From: Selaginella moellendorffii
Taxonomy: Eukaryota > Plantae > Lycopodiophyta
Direction of reading: 5' to 3'
DNA length: 64,000 nt
Assembly (NCBI RefSeq): GCF_000143415.4
Contig: NW_003314305.1
Span: 681,709 to 745,708, forward strand
A model generated the notes under the pieces. The model made no database searches. It was not told the DNA's origin and saw only the letters and a program-made list of their open reading frames with translations. A program made the position numbers and the translations under genes. Each line of letters opens with the position of its first letter. The first letter of the stretch is position 1. Shown one piece after another: positions 2,664-42,544 of the stretch.

Positions 2664-4433
2664 ATGGAAGGCAAACGTAAGAGAGGCGGCAAGAAGAAGA
2701 CGAGGAAGAAGAAGGATGCCAAGGTTCGTGTAGCAGCACCGCATTCTAGCGATGAGTCGGAGGATCGTGGGGTTGAGAGCCCTGGTGTGGAATTCGGGCT
2801 CGCATTCGCATCCAGGCACTGCGCCGTCCAGCCGCTGGGGAATCTCCTCTTCACGGGCAGGCAAAATATTCGTGATCCAGGGCTTGGGAGTCTCCAGCGT
2901 CTCAGCGATGAGATCGTCAGTGATATTCTGGCGCTGCTGGATGCCAAGGATCTGGCGCGGTCGGGCGTCTCGAGCAAGGGATTCTATGTTTTCAGCCACC
3001 AGGAAGCGCTGTGGCGGAATCTGGTCCTCGCGGAGCTGAAAGGAGGATTTTTGTTCCAAGGGAGCTGGAGAAAGACCTACGTCTCAGCTCGATCGGCTTG
3101 GACAAAGGTAAGGTGTTCTTTGAGAGCTTTGTTCGTGGAAGAAGGTTTTGATAGTTTTTGTTTCTTTCCATTCAGGAAGAGGATTTCTCTTCTCGATCGG
3201 CTTGTACAAAGGTAAGGTGTTCTTTGGGACTTTGTTCTGGAAGAAAGTTTTGATAGTTTGTGTTTCTTTTCTTTGCCAGAAAGAGGACTTCTCTCCTGTC
3301 AAGGTACTACTAATGACTGCTTTCTTGGCATCGTTCTAAGGTTCTCGTAATGTTCTTCTAGGTGGAAGACTTCTATTCGGACTACTTGTTCCAGAGCTGG
3401 CTTTGTGCCAGTGTGGAGATCAAAGACGAGTGGATTTCCAGGGACAACATCGAGCGCAGAAGCCACCTTTCAGTCGATGACTTTGTACGCGATTTCGAGA
3501 GGCTGAACAAACCAGTTCTTCTCACCGATGCTATCAACAACTGGCCTGCGCTGAAACGATGGAACCAGGACTATTTACTCGATCTGTGTGGGGACGTAGA
3601 CTTTGCTGCTGGTCCAGCTGACATGACGCTCAGCAACTATTTCGTCTATGCGAAGTCCGTGAAAGAGGAGCGACCTCTCTACTTGTTTGATCCAAAGTTC
3701 GGGGAGAAAGTTCCGCAGCTGGCTGCCGACTATGAAGTTCCTGTCTACTTCAGGGAGGACCTTTTCTCGATACTGGGGAAGGAGAGGCCCGACTATCGGT
3801 GGCTTATACTCGGGCCTGCAAGGTCTGGCTCCTCGTTTCATATTGATCCTAACAGCACTTCGGCTTGGAACGCAGTGGTCAAAGGTTCCAAGAAGTGGAT
3901 CCTGTATCCTCCGGGTGCTGTTCCTCCTGGTGTTCATCCCAGCCCGGATGGAGTGGACGTAGCAACTCCGGTGTCCATCACGGAATGGTTTATGAACTTC
4001 TATCACGAGACAAAGCGGGCCAAGCATAAACCGGTGGAGTGCGTTTGCAAAGCAGGCGAAGTCGTTTTCATACCAAACGGCTGGTGGCACATTGTTATAA
4101 ATCTGGAAGACTCGATCGCCATCACGCAGAACTACGTTAGCAGGTATTTCTGGTGTATGCGACGTCGCTGATGGCTAACATGTCATTTTTGCTAGGAGCA
4201 ACATCCTGAATGTTCTGGATTTCCTTAACAAGCCAAATTCCCAGGATTTGGTCTCAGGAACAAAAGATCGCGTTAACTTATACGACAAGTTCAAATCCAG
4301 GTACGAGGAGCTTCATCCCGGGTCATTGGAACAACTCCGGAACGAGAAAAGAGCTCAGGAATCTCAAAAGAAGCGGTCTGTTTGGGAGAGTGTAACTTCT
4401 GGCGGTGATTTTCGATTCAATTTCGGCAGTTGA
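2664..4433 (+). CDS. F-box + JmjC domain protein (JMJD6/JMJ22-like demethylase/hydroxylase)
   Basis: F-box LSDEIVSDILALL; JmjC with FHIDPN (HxD), KKW and WWH. Predicted exons 2664-3107, 3176-3211, 3280-3303, 3362-4143, 4196-4433 join in frame through GT-AG introns. Confidence 0.92.
3088..3294 (+). repeat. ~104-bp tandem duplication spanning an exon end, intron and next exon start
   Basis: ctcgatcggcttg(g/t)acaaagGTAAGGTGTTCTTT...cag(g/a)aagagga(t/c)ttctct occurs twice in tandem. Confidence 0.85.
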
Positions 4434-36459: not shown

Positions 36460-36990
36460 AACCTTGCAATCCTCTGAAACTGCCCAAATGTTAGCTCAGA
36501 GTGCGGAAGAAAATCTTGTGATAGATCCGGTTGGAGTGCACAAAGCAGCAGCGTCCGGGCAATCCAGTCGTGTCCGCCACTTCCCAGGAATGATCTTTCG
36601 CTGAGAAAACAAGCGTCGTTCTGGAACCATCTCACAACCATCTTGTTACCATCCACGACGAGGGCGTTGCGGAAGACCATGGTCTCCATCACTGGCGATG
36701 GCGGGAGAGGATACCATCGGTCCTACCTCACCGTCCAATCCGTTCCCCTCTAAGCTGCCACCCACCTCAAAGTTGTCACGAACGACGTGAGCCGACCGGT
36801 CGAGGACACCCTGGATCCATAGCCGCTCGAGGACATAGCGTTGGCGCCGCAGCGCTCCATCGGTTCGTGTGTGCATCGAAGACGCTCACTGATTTCTTGC
36901 CGCCCCATCCGATAGAGCTTACTGCCGAGAGCCTGGCACATGAATCCTGCCGTGCTGTGGAGTGCAGCGGAGGAGGAGGAAGAATCATCC
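36460..36990 (-). pseudogene. Kelch-repeat (F-box/kelch-like) fragment
   Basis: CQALGSKLYRMG and SVSVFDAHTNRWSAAAP are kelch-type motifs in shifted frames. Confidence 0.55.
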
Positions 36991-36999
36991 TGCTTTCTT

Positions 37000-37300
37000 G
37001 GCGCTACTGGCAATGAACGCGATATGCGGCGCCGAGAGCATCGATGCGATGCTAGCGATGCTCCTCGAGGGCCACACACCCAACGAGGCATCGTTCGTGG
37101 CGGTGCTAAGCACTTGCGCGGACGGAGGCCGAGTGAGCGATTCTATCGAGTGTTTGCGTCCAGATCATAGCGTGAGACCCGTCAAGGATCGACTACTACA
37201 GCAGCATTGTGGATGTTCTAGGACGCCGAGGAGCTCACATTCTTCCCATCTCCTGGGCTTCGTTCCTCCCGGCTTGCAAAGTACACGCAACACTTTATGA
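37000..37300 (+). pseudogene. PPR C-terminal (E-domain region) fragment
   Basis: MLLEGHTPNEASFVAVLSTC...VDVLGRRG...WASFLPACKVH. Confidence 0.7.
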
Positions 37301-38839
37301 CGAGGAGGACGTTTCTAGGGTATCCGGGCAGCAGCCGCAAGCGCACAGTCAGCAGCAGCCGCGAGTTCAGCCGCAGCAGCAGGTTGCAGCAGAGGCACTA
37401 CCAAGTCCAGTCATTCAGAAGAAGCGTTGATGATGGCCTCAGATTCCGGCCTCAAATTGCTGAGCAGCTCACTCCTGAACCATGCACAGTTCGTGCAGCT
37501 CTCCAGTCACCAAAAGCAGAAAAATGGAAAGCGGCCATGCAGAATGAGTATAATTCTTTGCAATGCAATGAAGTCTGGGAGCTTGTTCATCTCCCACCAG
37601 GCAGGAAGATTGCCAGCACAAAGTGGATTTTCAAGCGAAATTGGATGCCACTTTGTGACGTGCCATTGAGACATTCTCTCCTGTGGCCAAGATGTCTTCT
37701 ATTAGGATTATTTTACACCTTGCAGCATGCTGGGATTTAGAAATACATCAGCTTGGGGATGGTCCAAAGTTAAGTTGAGCTCACAAGTTGAGTTCAATTC
37801 AGCTCAAGTCAAAAGTAACAATATGATTCCTGAAGTCAATTATTGCTGAACCATAAATCTTATATAAGGAAATATTAAGTCAGAAAAATTGTATTCTTTG
37901 GTTAACTTGAAATTTATGAATTTAAGTATGAATTGTTCAGAGAGATTTCTATCTTTTGAATCTTTTTAATGCAGTTTATACAATTTCTAGAATTAGAAGT
38001 TCGTTTGAACCCATAGAAATTTTTGGGCTTTATTAGTCCCAAATAAAATGGGAATATTGAAGTTCGAATGAACCTAAAATTTCTATTGTACATTTCAACA
38101 TTTTAACATTTCAACAATTGACCAGAAATATATAAATAATTCGAAACACTGATTCACTCGTTCATTCTTTAGGGTTTACAGAGATGGGAAGTAAGAAAGA
38201 CAAAAAATCTGTAAGTAGTTTTAGCATACAGAAATGTGAAAATGTTAATTTTGTTTCACTACCACAATCTCCATATTACACACTTGGTCCTTATTACCTG
38301 TCCGGGAATATTGAGACCACTGTCACTATTGATAAAAATGTTTATGTTACTTCTGAAACAACAATCTAGAGCAAGAGAAAAGAAGAAATAGACAACACAG
38401 CAGAAAGCACTAATAAATCCACTTTATAAACCTTTCAATGGCTTTTGTAATCCACTAAAATATTAAAAAAAAGTAAGTTTTTTATATATATCTTATTCCT
38501 TTTGATATGTTTTGTCTTTGCAAAGATATATGATGTGGACAAATCAAAGAATTAAATCTATATATGAATTTGGGATTGAAAGGTAGTGTGTATTCGCCAT
38601 TATTATATATGGCAGACCAGCTATATAAAATAAGGCTACATATTAATTATATGCTAGTTTTTAGCTTCTAAAACCCTATAGCCACTTGTCTCTCATAGTA
38701 AGTTGTAATTACTAAGACTGACAATTATCATTCAATATAGTGTCATGTCATAATAAAACATCATTCCCGAGATTGAAATATAGTATATTAATCAGAGAAT
38801 TCTTATTGCTGGGAAGTTTAATTCTTCTTGTGTGTTGCA

Positions 38840-39343
38840 ATGGTTAGGGAGAAGTTTACTTTTGGTCCCAGAGGCCTCTCATATGAGTCTCCACCTCCAT
38901 CTCCACTCTCAATCAATAATCCACCTTCACCTCTATGCAACAATCCTCCTTTTCATTTTGAGGGTTGTTGTGAGGCTCTTCTATTTGTGACCTCTAGTGC
39001 AACTGAACAAGAACTCCTTCCGTATGATGTTGTTAAAAGAGTTGAATTGCCTCCAATGCTTCAAGAGCGATGTCAATATTTTCTTCAAGATTTTGCTCCA
39101 GATATGGTAGGGGAGCTTAATATAGATACATATTATCTTCAGTGTCCTATATGCAACTTTTATTTAAACAAGACAGATGGTTGCATGAGTTTGGTAAATT
39201 TTATTGAGCATTGTTGCAAATGCCCAAAAGCGGGTTTGGAAGGTGTGCACGTGTGGATGTATAAGAAAATCAAGAAAGAATTAAAAACACACAGCTATTA
39301 TGATTTCATGATGGAGAATAAACACTGTATCAGTAAGTGCTGA
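38840..39343 (+). CDS. Uncharacterised Pro-rich/Cys-His protein, paralog A (element cargo)
   Basis: Intronless ORF with SYESPP and YYLQCPIC...EHCCKCP...HVWMYKKIKKEL. Clear paralog of 39637-40185. Confidence 0.6.
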   Translation: MVREKFTFGPRGLSYESPPPSPLSINNPPSPLCNNPPFHFEGCCEALLFVTSSATEQELLPYDVVKRVELPPMLQERCQYFLQDFAPDMVGELNIDTYYLQCPICNFYLNKTDGCMSLVNFIEHCCKCPKAGLEGVHVWMYKKIKKELKTHSYYDFMMENKHCISKC

Positions 39344-39636
39344 ATATGGGATATTTAGGCCACCCTTTAATGTAATATGAAAGTCATGCATAGTTTTTTC
39401 AAAAGTTTAATTCTTTATGAGTAAAGTGGAGAATTTTATATTTTCGAGAATGATATTATTCTAACATGTATAAAGATATTATTATATATACAAGTGGTTC
39501 TGACACTGTTATAATTCTGAAGTCTATTTTAAGACTGACAATTTAAACTTTAAAGAACCCCTAGATCTTTTCTTAGTATAAATACTGACAAGGGATGCTT
39601 TTAACATTGAAATTTCAGTTTGTTTAGAGTGTAGGA

Positions 39637-40185
39637 ATGGCTAGGGAAAATGCTATTGCTACTCGCACTTGGCCCCCATGCATTTCATATGAGTCTCCAC
39701 CTTCATCTTCAACTTCTACCAACATTCCACCCTTCCCTCCACACAACAATTGTTGTGAGGTTTTTTCTTTTGTAGCCCCAAGTGTGACTGAACAAGAGAT
39801 CCCTCTTCCAAATAATGTTCTAGATGTTGTTACTAAAGATGGATTGCCTCATGTGCTTCAAGAGCGATGCCAGATGTTTCTTCAAAATCTTGCTCCCGAT
39901 ATGGTTGAAACTTTTGAAAGAATGAACACATATTATCTCCAGTGTCTCATCTACTACTTTTATTTAGATAAAACGGAAGGCTGTATGGGTCTAGAAACTT
40001 TTCTAGAACACTGTCATAACTGCCCAAGAATTGGTTTGGAAGGTGTGCATAAATTGATGTATAAAAAAATCAAAAAAGAGTTAAGAACACACAATCATTA
40101 TCATTTCATGGTGAGGAACAATATTCCGTTAGTAAATCTTACATCCACAAGTGTTGAATATGGTATTTTTAGGCCATCCTACTGA
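39637..40185 (+). CDS. Uncharacterised Pro-rich/Cys-His protein, paralog B (element cargo)
   Basis: SYESPP and YYLQCLIY...EHCHNCP...HKLMYKKIKKEL. Confidence 0.6.
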   Translation: MARENAIATRTWPPCISYESPPSSSTSTNIPPFPPHNNCCEVFSFVAPSVTEQEIPLPNNVLDVVTKDGLPHVLQERCQMFLQNLAPDMVETFERMNTYYLQCLIYYFYLDKTEGCMGLETFLEHCHNCPRIGLEGVHKLMYKKIKKELRTHNHYHFMVRNNIPLVNLTSTSVEYGIFRPSY

Positions 40186-40484
40186 AAATTCCAGCCACTA
40201 ATAATTCTTACACTATGATATTATCCATCTCCGCCCCCCCCCCCCCCCCCTCTCGCCTTTTTTTTATTAACAAAATTGTATTACCTATAGATAATAAACT
40301 GATAATACTAGTAATTATGAAATTTGAAAGACTGACACTGTAACTTTGTCATCTCTGACACTGACACTGTCTTTGTCACTGACACTATCACTGTCACTAT
40401 CTGCTGCACTGACACTGTCAGTGTCACAATCATTATCACATTGACATGTGACACATCTTTCTCATTGCAACTGAAGATGTTGGC

Positions 40485-41381
40485 ATGGATCTTGGAGCAA
40501 AAAGCTCTCACAAGCCTGATGTTGAGTATCATTCTGCTCCAAGACATCGCCCCCGAATTGAGCCACCTCAAGTGGCTGATGAAGAAAGTGCATCACAGCA
40601 TGTTGAAATTGCTTATCGTAGCGTGGAGCCGAAGCAATGGGCAATCCATCAAGTGGCAGCAAAATCAAATGTAAGGTGTGTGGGGATGCTTCTGAGGGGC
40701 AAGTGTTGGGCTTGGATTTGTGGTGATAAATTTGCTTTTGTTCTAGCCCCATGTTTCCATGGGGAACGAAAGCAAACAGGATTTTCAAGATGGTGTTGGT
40801 TATATTGCTGCAACACTGATGTCAACCATACAAAGTGGCTTGAAGACACTATAGTGACTAAACCTGATGCAATACCTAAAGAATGGCCAGTTGTTAATGG
40901 GGTTGTGCTCACCTCGGATAAGATTGAAAACCTTGAGAAATCTGGTTTCAATCTTGAAAAGAGAGTTGGAGACATAAGTGATAAAACTAGGACTGTTCCT
41001 ACAAAGATGCATAGGAGGCCAGCGAGAAAAGATAAGGCAGTTAAATTTATTGGTACCATCTCCAAGCAGAAGAAAGGTAAAATAAACTTGGCTCAAACAC
41101 TTGAGTGTGAGATTCTCTCCACAGAGTACATCACTGTGCTTGCAAAGGAGTACATAGTCAAAATAGAAGGTGGAAAGTACACAATTGCTATTCAAGACTT
41201 TCCTTCTTGCACATGTCCAGACTTTACGAAGCGTGAGGAATATGGGAAGGCATATGCTCCTTGCAAGCATATGTACTACATTTTCATCAATAACTTGCAC
41301 CAGGATCCTAAAGTGGATATTCATATACACCAAGCAAGCCTTACTATTGCCGAGTTGCAGAAATTTTTTGGAGCTAATTAG
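40485..41381 (+). CDS. SWIM zinc-finger protein (transposase C-terminal-like, no DDE core seen)
   Basis: YTIAIQDFPSCTCPDF...PCKHMYYI fits the CxC-xn-CxH SWIM motif; additional Cys cluster N-terminally. Confidence 0.75.
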   Translation: MDLGAKSSHKPDVEYHSAPRHRPRIEPPQVADEESASQHVEIAYRSVEPKQWAIHQVAAKSNVRCVGMLLRGKCWAWICGDKFAFVLAPCFHGERKQTGFSRWCWLYCCNTDVNHTKWLEDTIVTKPDAIPKEWPVVNGVVLTSDKIENLEKSGFNLEKRVGDISDKTRTVPTKMHRRPARKDKAVKFIGTISKQKKGKINLAQTLECEILSTEYITVLAKEYIVKIEGGKYTIAIQDFPSCTCPDFTKREEYGKAYAPCKHMYYIFINNLHQDPKVDIHIHQASLTIAELQKFFGAN

Positions 41382-42343
41382 ATTTTCTAGCACTATCGAT
41401 GTTTATTCTCTATCAATAATATAAACTAATTATACCTTATATAATTAATAAAAATATTTTATTATTTCACTTTTCATTTCATATACTTGTGAGGGTTCTT
41501 TTCGCAATACTACCCATAGTATTCGTCAGTTTCCATTTTGTCTTTACCATCTCAAAAAATATTTCATAGTAGTCTTTTGGGTGCGTGATGTTGCAATGTA
41601 TTGTGAGAGCATATGTACCATCATAGTTGTTTTTTTTTCCTTTCAAATGGTTATATATCCTTATATATAATCTTAATTCAAATTTAATAATTTTAAAATT
41701 CTGACGAACCTGACATTTACTAGTTAGAAAGCACAGAGTACAAATTTAAAGAAGTGACAAGAATACTCTTTTTGCAAACATTTTATTTTATATTCTAACA
41801 AACATCTCTATCATTGCATGTAGTAAATATTTAAATTATTAAAACAGGAAGTGTCCTTTAGAACATTTTTATCTATATAATATATAGAGAGTTATGAAAT
41901 TATTAAGTTCGCCATAACTTTAAAATTTTAAAGTTTATAATGTTTGTACTAAATTACAATTGAAAATTGAGCTCAACTCTTCAACTCGTGAGCTGAAGTA
42001 TGGTCCACGCTCATCAGCTTGATATCAAGATGGCCTTTCTTTGTATAGAGTGGTGGTTATGGGAAACCGGTATCATAGCAAATAACAATCTCATGGGCAA
42101 CAAGACCACACAAGCGAGCAGTAAGGCTATGCAACTCTAGATTGCCTGCTTGACTGCAGCAGAAGAAGTGGAAGAGCAAACTTCATGTTGTGGAGAAATC
42201 CATCCAACATGACCACTTGTAAAGCACTGCCTATTTCTTTTCACCCAGACAGACTTTGAGAACTGGGTCAAGGAAATCTGCTTCATCTTTCTCTGTAACA
42301 ATTGTATGTGAACTGTGGGTGGAAAGAAGCAAAACTAGCCACT

Positions 42344-42544
42344 GGTGACAGAATAGGAAGAGTGGCAGATCCAAAACGACAAGGCAGTCTCCTCTATGAG
42401 GATTGGCTTGGGCAAATTAAGGATACAAACTTCATATGGTGAGTGGTAGTTAGGGGAAACTAGAGTGTGGTGGTGCAATTTGCCCAAGCCAATCCTCATA
42501 GAAAAGACTGCCTGGATCTGCCACTCTTCTTGTTCTGTGTCACC
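42344..42544. repeat. Inverted repeat / fold-back hairpin (~70-nt arms, ~58-nt loop)
   Basis: 42344-42418 is the reverse complement of 42477-42544 apart from a 9-nt bulge, a 2-nt indel and ~4 mismatches. Confidence 0.9.

Follow-up and report, generated by a model that had tools for sequence, protein, structure and literature searches.

A probable non-autonomous Mutator-like transposon in Selaginella moellendorffii with a SWIM-bearing transposase tail and two paralogous orphan genes

The genome of the lycophyte Selaginella moellendorffii contains, within an already dead Copia retrotransposon, a clean, AT-rich insertion of 4257 bp (4.26 kb). The insertion occupies positions 37755-42011 of the window that was analysed, a 64-kb stretch of contig NW_003314305.1 (positions 681,709 to 745,708 of the forward strand; assembly GCF_000143415.4). 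Four open reading frames (ORFs) that start at 38184, 38840, 39637 and 40485 are carried on its plus strand. An original prediction, made from the nucleotide sequence, had described these ORFs, all of which are present, and had likened the insertion to a Mutator-like transposable element (MULE). Our analyses show that one ORF encodes the C-terminal part of a transposase and that two others are paralogous orphan genes, and they suggest that the element as a whole is a MULE that has no catalytic core of its own.

The insertion and its ends

When positions 37755-42020 (the insertion plus one copy of the direct repeat that flanks it) are deleted, the flanks join in one frame that reads ...SIRIILHLAACWDLEIHQL and continues directly as DIKMAFL, a Copia reverse transcriptase (RT) motif. 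The joined frame thus confirms the claim that this motif is restored by removal of the insert. The left part of the target (37297..37754, plus strand) translates to Copia-type N-terminal RT motifs ending with ...DLEIHQL at the insertion point, and the RT motif resumes as DIKMAFL at 42021..42041 (plus strand), after which the Copia frame is lost. This piece of Copia is decayed: stops and frameshifts lie on either side of the junction, and the RT frame ends a few codons past it. The base composition of the insert is also distinct, with a guanine-plus-cytosine (GC) content of 33-35% versus about 47% in its surroundings, where the flanking 2-kb bins range over 46-50%. The GC content at third codon positions (GC3) of the left Copia part is 0.54, which is similar to that of the remainder of the window.

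The same nine bases, CATCAGCTT, are present at both 37746-37754 and 42012-42020 as a direct repeat, which represents the left and right copies of the target-site duplication. The duplication may be 9 bp long, or it may comprise 8 bp plus one chance match, in which case the left copy would be made up of only the last 8 nt. Both of the lengths that had been predicted are therefore possible. If the duplication is the 8-bp ATCAGCTT, both termini start with G, as is typical of MULEs, and the alignment of the two ends is in register.

The ends are formed by terminal inverted repeats (TIRs) at 37755..37800 (left, plus strand) and 41966..42011 (right, minus strand). The left repeat was recognized by end alignment and carries subterminal AAGTTGAG(C/T)TCA repeats (direct repeat family D15). 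When the outermost 20 nt of the two ends are compared in inverted orientation, 13 are matched. When the first 60 nt are aligned locally with the reverse-complemented last 60 nt, the best alignment extends over ~43 nt with ~70% identity, and its score of 16 was reached in 0 of 2000 shuffles (mean 7.0) and in 0.14% of random interior 60-mer pairs. In addition, the 14-mer AGCTCACRAGTTGA has only two occurrences in the 64 kb, which are inverted relative to each other and located 24 and 18 nt from the respective ends (the left copy at 37778-37791), and the window contains six TTGAGYTCA sites, of which four fall within the two termini. The inverted repeat exceeds chance, yet is short and imperfect, and these findings agree with the imperfect ends and TTGAG(C/T)TC submotifs described previously.

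Coding capacity of the element

The four ORFs differ greatly in how well they can be distinguished from chance. ORF1 (38184..38369, plus strand) encodes only 61 amino acids (aa), whereas the longest ORF in shuffled versions of the element averages 72 aa. Its GC3 of 0.24 resembles that of intergenic DNA, and a Pfam search produced no match. ORF1 is at chance level and probably not a gene, and of the four ORFs listed previously it is the one that is not credible. In contrast, ORF4 (298 aa) is far longer than the longest ORF seen in 300 shuffles of the element sequence (186 aa), and the lengths of ORF2 (167 aa) and ORF3 (182 aa) are near this maximum.

ORF4 (40485..41381, plus strand) contains an S-H-K-P motif, a Cys-rich region, a WP..G..L..E...L..GF motif and a C-terminal SWIM finger (C242-x-C244-x15-C260-x-H262), and lacks a catalytic core as judged by family homology. 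The finger matches the Pfam SWIM model below its threshold (E 0.0024), and other members of the ORF4 family reach the gathering score of this model. An exhaustive HMMER search with ORF4 yielded 122 proteins at E<=1e-3, 30 of them at E<=1e-10, so the blank result of a word-based protein search with the same query is a length-window artefact. These relatives include proteins of a fern, Adiantum nelumboides, and of a liverwort, Riccia sorocarpa, and the others derive from Logan or ENA assemblies. The similarity (29-36% identity) spans nearly the whole of ORF4, and always involves the C-terminal ~300 residues of proteins that are 400-754 aa long. Searches of PDB sequences with ORF4 and with the family alignment gave nothing meaningful, and the ESM Atlas leads for ORF4 were small SWIM proteins, all below 0.9.

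The family alignment (A3) reveals a fixed order of conserved motifs. The sequence P-x-(T/C)-N-L-A-E-(S/T)-x-H-x-x-W is followed by G-D..T...K-R and S-H-R-P-E-Y, then by a Cys-rich block (W-A-I-R-R ... C ... C ... A-P-C-F ... W-F-C ... H-T-W), and finally by W-P..G-T.L...E...L..A-G-F, a SWIM finger and a tail in which F-I-H-Q is conserved. ORF4 begins at the S-H-(R/K)-P motif and retains all family motifs downstream of it, and it agrees with the other members at 40 of the 54 positions that are conserved in at least 80% of them. A family profile built without ORF4 matches the open frame at 40452-41378 with an E value of 6e-66, but only through profile positions 126-447. By this homology, ORF4 is the 3ʹ part (the last ~300 codons) of the family's transposase gene, intact and with its own ATG. 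The original prediction had treated this SWIM ORF as an accessory gene. The profile match indicates instead that it represents a transposase C-terminus that has been cut upstream of S-H-R-P.

Immediately upstream of the point where transposase-family homology starts are an 18-nt C-tract and, after it, a degenerate TGACAC/TGTCAC array (40232..40440, plus strand; repeat family D2). This array may be the scar of a rearrangement in which the transposase gene lost its 5ʹ part, including the core. A tblastn search with the upstream exons of the relatives and a profile search with their core (see below) both failed to detect a core anywhere in the 64-kb window, the element included, in line with the previous observation that no D-D-E core is visible. 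Thus the element is non-autonomous, a status that is compatible with membership of the Mutator superfamily.

ORF2 (38840..39343, plus strand) encodes a Pro/Ser-rich head followed by a predicted helical Cys/His domain, and ORF3 (39637..40185, plus strand) is its paralogue. The two proteins are 57% identical, and their DNA is 68-73% identical depending on the alignment. Within the conserved body (codons 40-150), the ratio of nonsynonymous to synonymous substitution rates (dN/dS) is 0.22-0.37 with a dS of 0.7-1.0. Four indels of 9, 21, 12 and 3 nt separate the bodies of the two ORFs and all are in frame. The only indel to shift the frame, one of 14 nt, lies at the very 3ʹ end. Under neutral simulation with the base composition of the element, the probability that both ORFs would be open at the given divergence is 1e-4 to 3e-3. 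By these measures, ORF2 and ORF3 are real genes that were maintained as coding sequence while they diverged. A lone insertion in a dead Copia element should drift neutrally, and therefore this constraint would predate the insertion and would have acted in an active lineage.

The proposal that these ORFs are novel holds true for all the comparisons made. Word searches with ORF3 and with the ORF2/ORF3 alignment, which covered proteins of 0.55-1.75 times the query length, revealed no relatives, and none were found among PDB sequences or in the 65 transposase loci described below. Derivation from the transposase was rejected because hhalign comparisons with both transposase profiles gave probabilities of <1%. 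Likewise, capture of a strumpellin gene was considered on the basis of a match between ORF3 and Strumpellin (PF10266) with an E value of 9.8e-5, and was set aside because the score of 20.7 bits is under the cutoff of 25 and ORF2 has no match. A Peptidase_C48 lead for ORF3 in the ESM Atlas was below 0.9 and was backed by no other search, and the other leads for this ORF were streptophyte hypothetical proteins, also below 0.9.

Two features connect ORF2, ORF3 and ORF4 to each other. Their GC3 values (0.33, 0.31 and 0.37, respectively) are well separated from the 0.50-0.77 of every other ORF of at least 200 aa in the window. Moreover, the sequence AAGACTGACA is present three times in the 64 kb (chance mean 0.19), always on the plus strand and within the element, and these copies sit 106-157 nt upstream of the three ATGs. 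The copies at 38714..38723 and 39531..39540 (both plus strand) precede ORF2 by 126 nt and ORF3 by 106 nt, respectively, and the third (40328-40337) is included in the array upstream of ORF4. TATA-like boxes lie between AAGACTGACA and the ATG for ORF2 and ORF3, and AAGACTGACA is therefore a candidate for a shared promoter element. The shared AT-rich codon make-up and the common upstream motif lead us to read ORF2-4 as native to the element rather than as a recent capture from the host.

This matter bears on an alternative in which the element is a Pack-MULE-like chimera, with transposon ends surrounding captured fragments that have no function: a transposase piece (ORF4) and a tandem-duplicated piece of a host gene (ORF2 and ORF3), perhaps strumpellin. 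Capture of gene fragments is common in MULEs (PMC5225508; PMC6446971), and the weak Strumpellin match of ORF3 would point to a donor, but this match is sub-threshold and absent from ORF2. In favour of a chimera, ORF4 represents no more than part of the gene of its family. ORF2 and ORF3 are complete with their own ATGs, their dN/dS is below 1, their indels are in frame, and under neutrality they would very rarely have stayed open, all of which argues against it. A donor that encodes a long protein would have fallen outside the range of the word searches. However, the GC3 of ORF2 and ORF3 is like that of ORF4 and unlike that of all other long ORFs in the window, and all three share AAGACTGACA. 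On balance we regard such a chimera as unlikely, and favour a non-autonomous MULE whose ORF2 and ORF3 were kept as genes.

Two other features were recorded in the DNA that borders the insertion. Immediately left of the Copia fragment, a GC-rich ORF at 36962-37300 resembles a fragment of a pentatricopeptide-repeat protein. The right flank holds an inverted duplication of ~70 nt (42348-42418 and 42477-42538) with 82% identity.

Transposase relatives and their putative D-D-E core

A scan of metagenome contigs with the A3 alignment produced 65 loci, which are taken to be plant (moss) genomic DNA given their repetitiveness and introns. In the better-preserved loci (L001, L003, L005, L009 and L016), an exon of ~750 aa lies upstream of the exon that resembles ORF4, and stretches homologous to this upstream exon are present in more than 30 loci, most of which have decayed. 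These five loci appear to encode a highly repeated transposase of ~1200 aa that includes an N-terminal Cys/His finger, a D-D-E core, a Cys-rich region and a SWIM finger. No accessory ORFs were seen in the long loci, whose copies are mostly decayed. Two long contigs (L048 and L058) were matched only via the SWIM finger. Intact ORFs are numerous on both, including three in L048 that share a similar MTGG... N-terminus and are suspected to be capsid-like, and the contigs look like giant-virus DNA rather than members of the transposase family.

The upstream exon has an N-terminal Cys/His region that ends in H-x-H. Beyond this point, every intact copy shares an Asp (in M-F-D-H), a second Asp (in F-M-A-D-S-A), a C-x-x-H motif and a Trp. 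The Glu that would complete the triad belongs to the N-L-A-E motif and is located just 3ʹ of a conserved intron, for which splice donor and acceptor (GT...AG) are visible in L005. Many proteins of the ORF4 family (P0005-P0013, P0055 and P0104) have ORFs that begin a few residues before P-x-T/C-N-L-A-E. These ORF starts, together with the intron in L005 (region 3380-3520), imply that the catalytic E resides on a different exon from both D residues throughout the family.

The resulting core has the spacing D(66)D(130)E, its C-x-x-H lying at +32 and its W at about -22. In L005, the first D is residue 536, the second D is 602, the H of C-x-x-H is 634, the W is 710 and the E is about 732. The corresponding residues in Muta1 of Aedes aegypti are D214, D283, H307, W401 and E419 (PMC5225508). 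Muta1 is an experimentally active MULE whose residues have been tested by mutagenesis; its insertions duplicate 8 or 9 bp of target, and it has given rise to numerous non-autonomous derivatives (PMC5225508). The triad spacing and helper residues of L005 agree with those of Muta1, as judged by motif positions rather than by scored similarity. Unlike the present family, Muta1 has a FLYWCH finger, no SWIM finger and long TIRs (PMC5225508).

On the basis of this geometry and architecture, it is likely that the transposase family is Mutator-like. Membership of the hAT superfamily was rejected. Transposases of the hAT type have a long D-to-E spacing, whereas this spacing is only ~130 in the relatives, in which no hAT Pfam domain was found either.

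A superfamily other than Mutator whose transposases end in SWIM and whose insertions create 8-bp duplications must also be weighed, chiefly Zisupton (KDZ class) or a lineage that has not yet been classified. Zisupton transposases combine KDZ and CxC domains with a SWIM finger at the C-terminus, and produce 8-bp duplications (bioRxiv 10.1101/2024.08.15.608186; PMC12730594), and cargo genes are present in some Zisupton/KDZ lineages. The N-terminal Cys-rich region of the relatives is consistent with such an origin, as are the termini that fall in register under an 8-bp duplication, although MULEs make 8-bp duplications too. The relatives have no match to the Pfam MULE model; however, the Pfam KDZ model (PF18758) is not detected in eight relative core sequences either, even at E<=10, and the spacing of the triad, C-x-x-H and W parallels that of Muta1. 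Furthermore, the cited KDZ elements are from fungi (and fish, via the Zisupton paper) rather than land plants, and Zisupton and Selaginella were co-mentioned only in unrelated passages. We therefore consider a Zisupton-like or similar origin quite unlikely, and retain the Mutator-like assignment. The transposase lineage is represented in the lycophyte studied here as well as in a fern, a liverwort and, probably, mosses, and only its SWIM finger is detected by the domain libraries that were searched.

Assignment of the element and its possible biology

Our preferred reading, held with moderate confidence, is that the whole region is a non-autonomous MULE-type transposon that has lost its catalytic core while keeping a transposase tail and two constrained orphan paralogues. 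Mutator-like is the best superfamily call, being supported by the 8- or 9-bp duplication, the SWIM tail and the D-D-E geometry of the relatives, and the same observations sustain the MULE-like reading of the original prediction. MULEs create target duplications of 8-11 bp (usually 9), frequently have a C-terminal SWIM finger, possess TIRs that are variable or absent, and may carry extra ORFs (PMC6446971). Duplications of both 8 and 9 bp are known among them (PMC5225508; PMC6446971).

The element can be compared with MULEs that carry extra ORFs, such as MuDR (mudrA and mudrB) and VANDAL21/Hi (VANA, VANB and VANC). These share with it a target duplication in the 8-11-bp range, a transposase family that ends in SWIM and whose relatives here exhibit an N-terminal zinc finger, a D-D-E core, C-x-x-H and W, and lineage-restricted accessory ORFs without homologues elsewhere (PMC6446971). 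Unlike classical MULEs, however, the present element has short and imperfect termini rather than long TIRs, and in its relatives the Pfam MULE model misses the core, and the catalytic E lies ~250 residues before the SWIM finger, an interval that includes a conserved Cys-rich module. A further difference from MuDR and VANDAL21 is that the transposase ORF of the present copy consists of the tail only, and any resemblance to the anti-silencing function of VANC is drawn by analogy.

Several results weigh against this reading. The core of the relatives matched no Pfam (MULE PF10551 and KDZ PF18758 included), NCBIfam or PDB sequence profile when their exons were searched one by one, and a Pfam search of eight relative core sequences at E<=10 likewise found no match to any model, MULE and KDZ included. 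Because there is no scored homology for this core, the Mutator assignment rests on motif geometry and architecture. No usable end pair or duplication was recovered for the relatives by inverted-repeat scans, by examination of shared-block boundaries (L038/L052 and L016/L006) or by a search with the reverse-complemented sequence of a 3ʹ boundary. The inverted repeats of the element are weak (~70% over 43 nt), and its duplication, if 8 bp, could fit Zisupton and hAT as well as Mutator. No second copy of the element is present within the window, and its family status and mobility are accordingly presumptive. ORF4 deviates at 14 of the 54 conserved positions, which may reflect drift. Finally, AlphaFold2 models of ORF4 alone (predicted local distance difference test score, pLDDT, of 35.5) and of ORF2 with a 2-row alignment (pLDDT 38.8) were unusable.

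The single copy and the weak inverted repeats would also fit a small AT-rich host gene cluster that arrived through a different kind of insertion or through repair, and whose 9-mer and end similarity are incidental. This is extremely improbable given a perfect 9-bp direct repeat exactly at the motif-restoring junction, an inverted-repeat score seen in 0 of 2000 shuffles, and the homology of ORF4 to a transposase C-terminus whose family is present in other plant genomes in many copies, most of them decayed.

Under the MULE reading, the following history can be proposed. A transposase gene would have lost its N-terminal finger and D-D-E core, leaving an element that is mobilized in trans by an autonomous relative, and the TTGAGCTCA-like subterminal motifs at its ends may serve as binding sites for the transposase of that relative. 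ORF2 and ORF3 would be tandem paralogous orphan genes that purifying selection kept open in an active lineage before the insertion. The present copy would then have entered the dead Copia element by cut-and-paste transposition, duplicating 9 (or 8) bp of the target.

The roles of the encoded proteins can be suggested by analogy. ORF4 may be a core-less derivative that binds DNA or transposase and modulates transposition, as truncated transposases do elsewhere. For example, the KP repressor of the P element is a truncated transposase from an internally deleted element that keeps the N-terminal DNA-binding part. Like KP, ORF4 could be the product of an internally deleted element whose core-less transposase piece binds DNA or the full protein, whereas it differs from KP in keeping the C-terminal part. 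ORF2 and ORF3 may be lineage-specific accessory proteins of a status comparable to mudrB and, purely by analogy with VANDAL-type MULEs, might have an anti-silencing role.

A more ambitious version of this proposal, which we judge improbable, is that ORF2-4 are working genes of a lineage that has no core of its own and parasitizes an autonomous Mutator-like element, and that nevertheless still invests in its own proteins. If this is true, the binding target of ORF4 would be either the termini common to both elements or the transposase of the partner. ORF2 and ORF3 would represent small accessory proteins of a new Cys/His class that might, for example, counter silencing or steer the borrowed transposase to the ends of their own element.

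Accessory genes of transposons offer a rare view of the dealings of mobile DNA with host silencing and with its own transposase, and to our knowledge almost all of those known come from flowering plants. The lycophyte element described here offers three selected-looking ORFs in the absence of a catalytic core. Should these ORFs be inactive, the element would be one more decaying MULE derivative. If they are expressed and active, the element would be a small and convenient model of the competition among non-autonomous elements for a transposase that they borrow.

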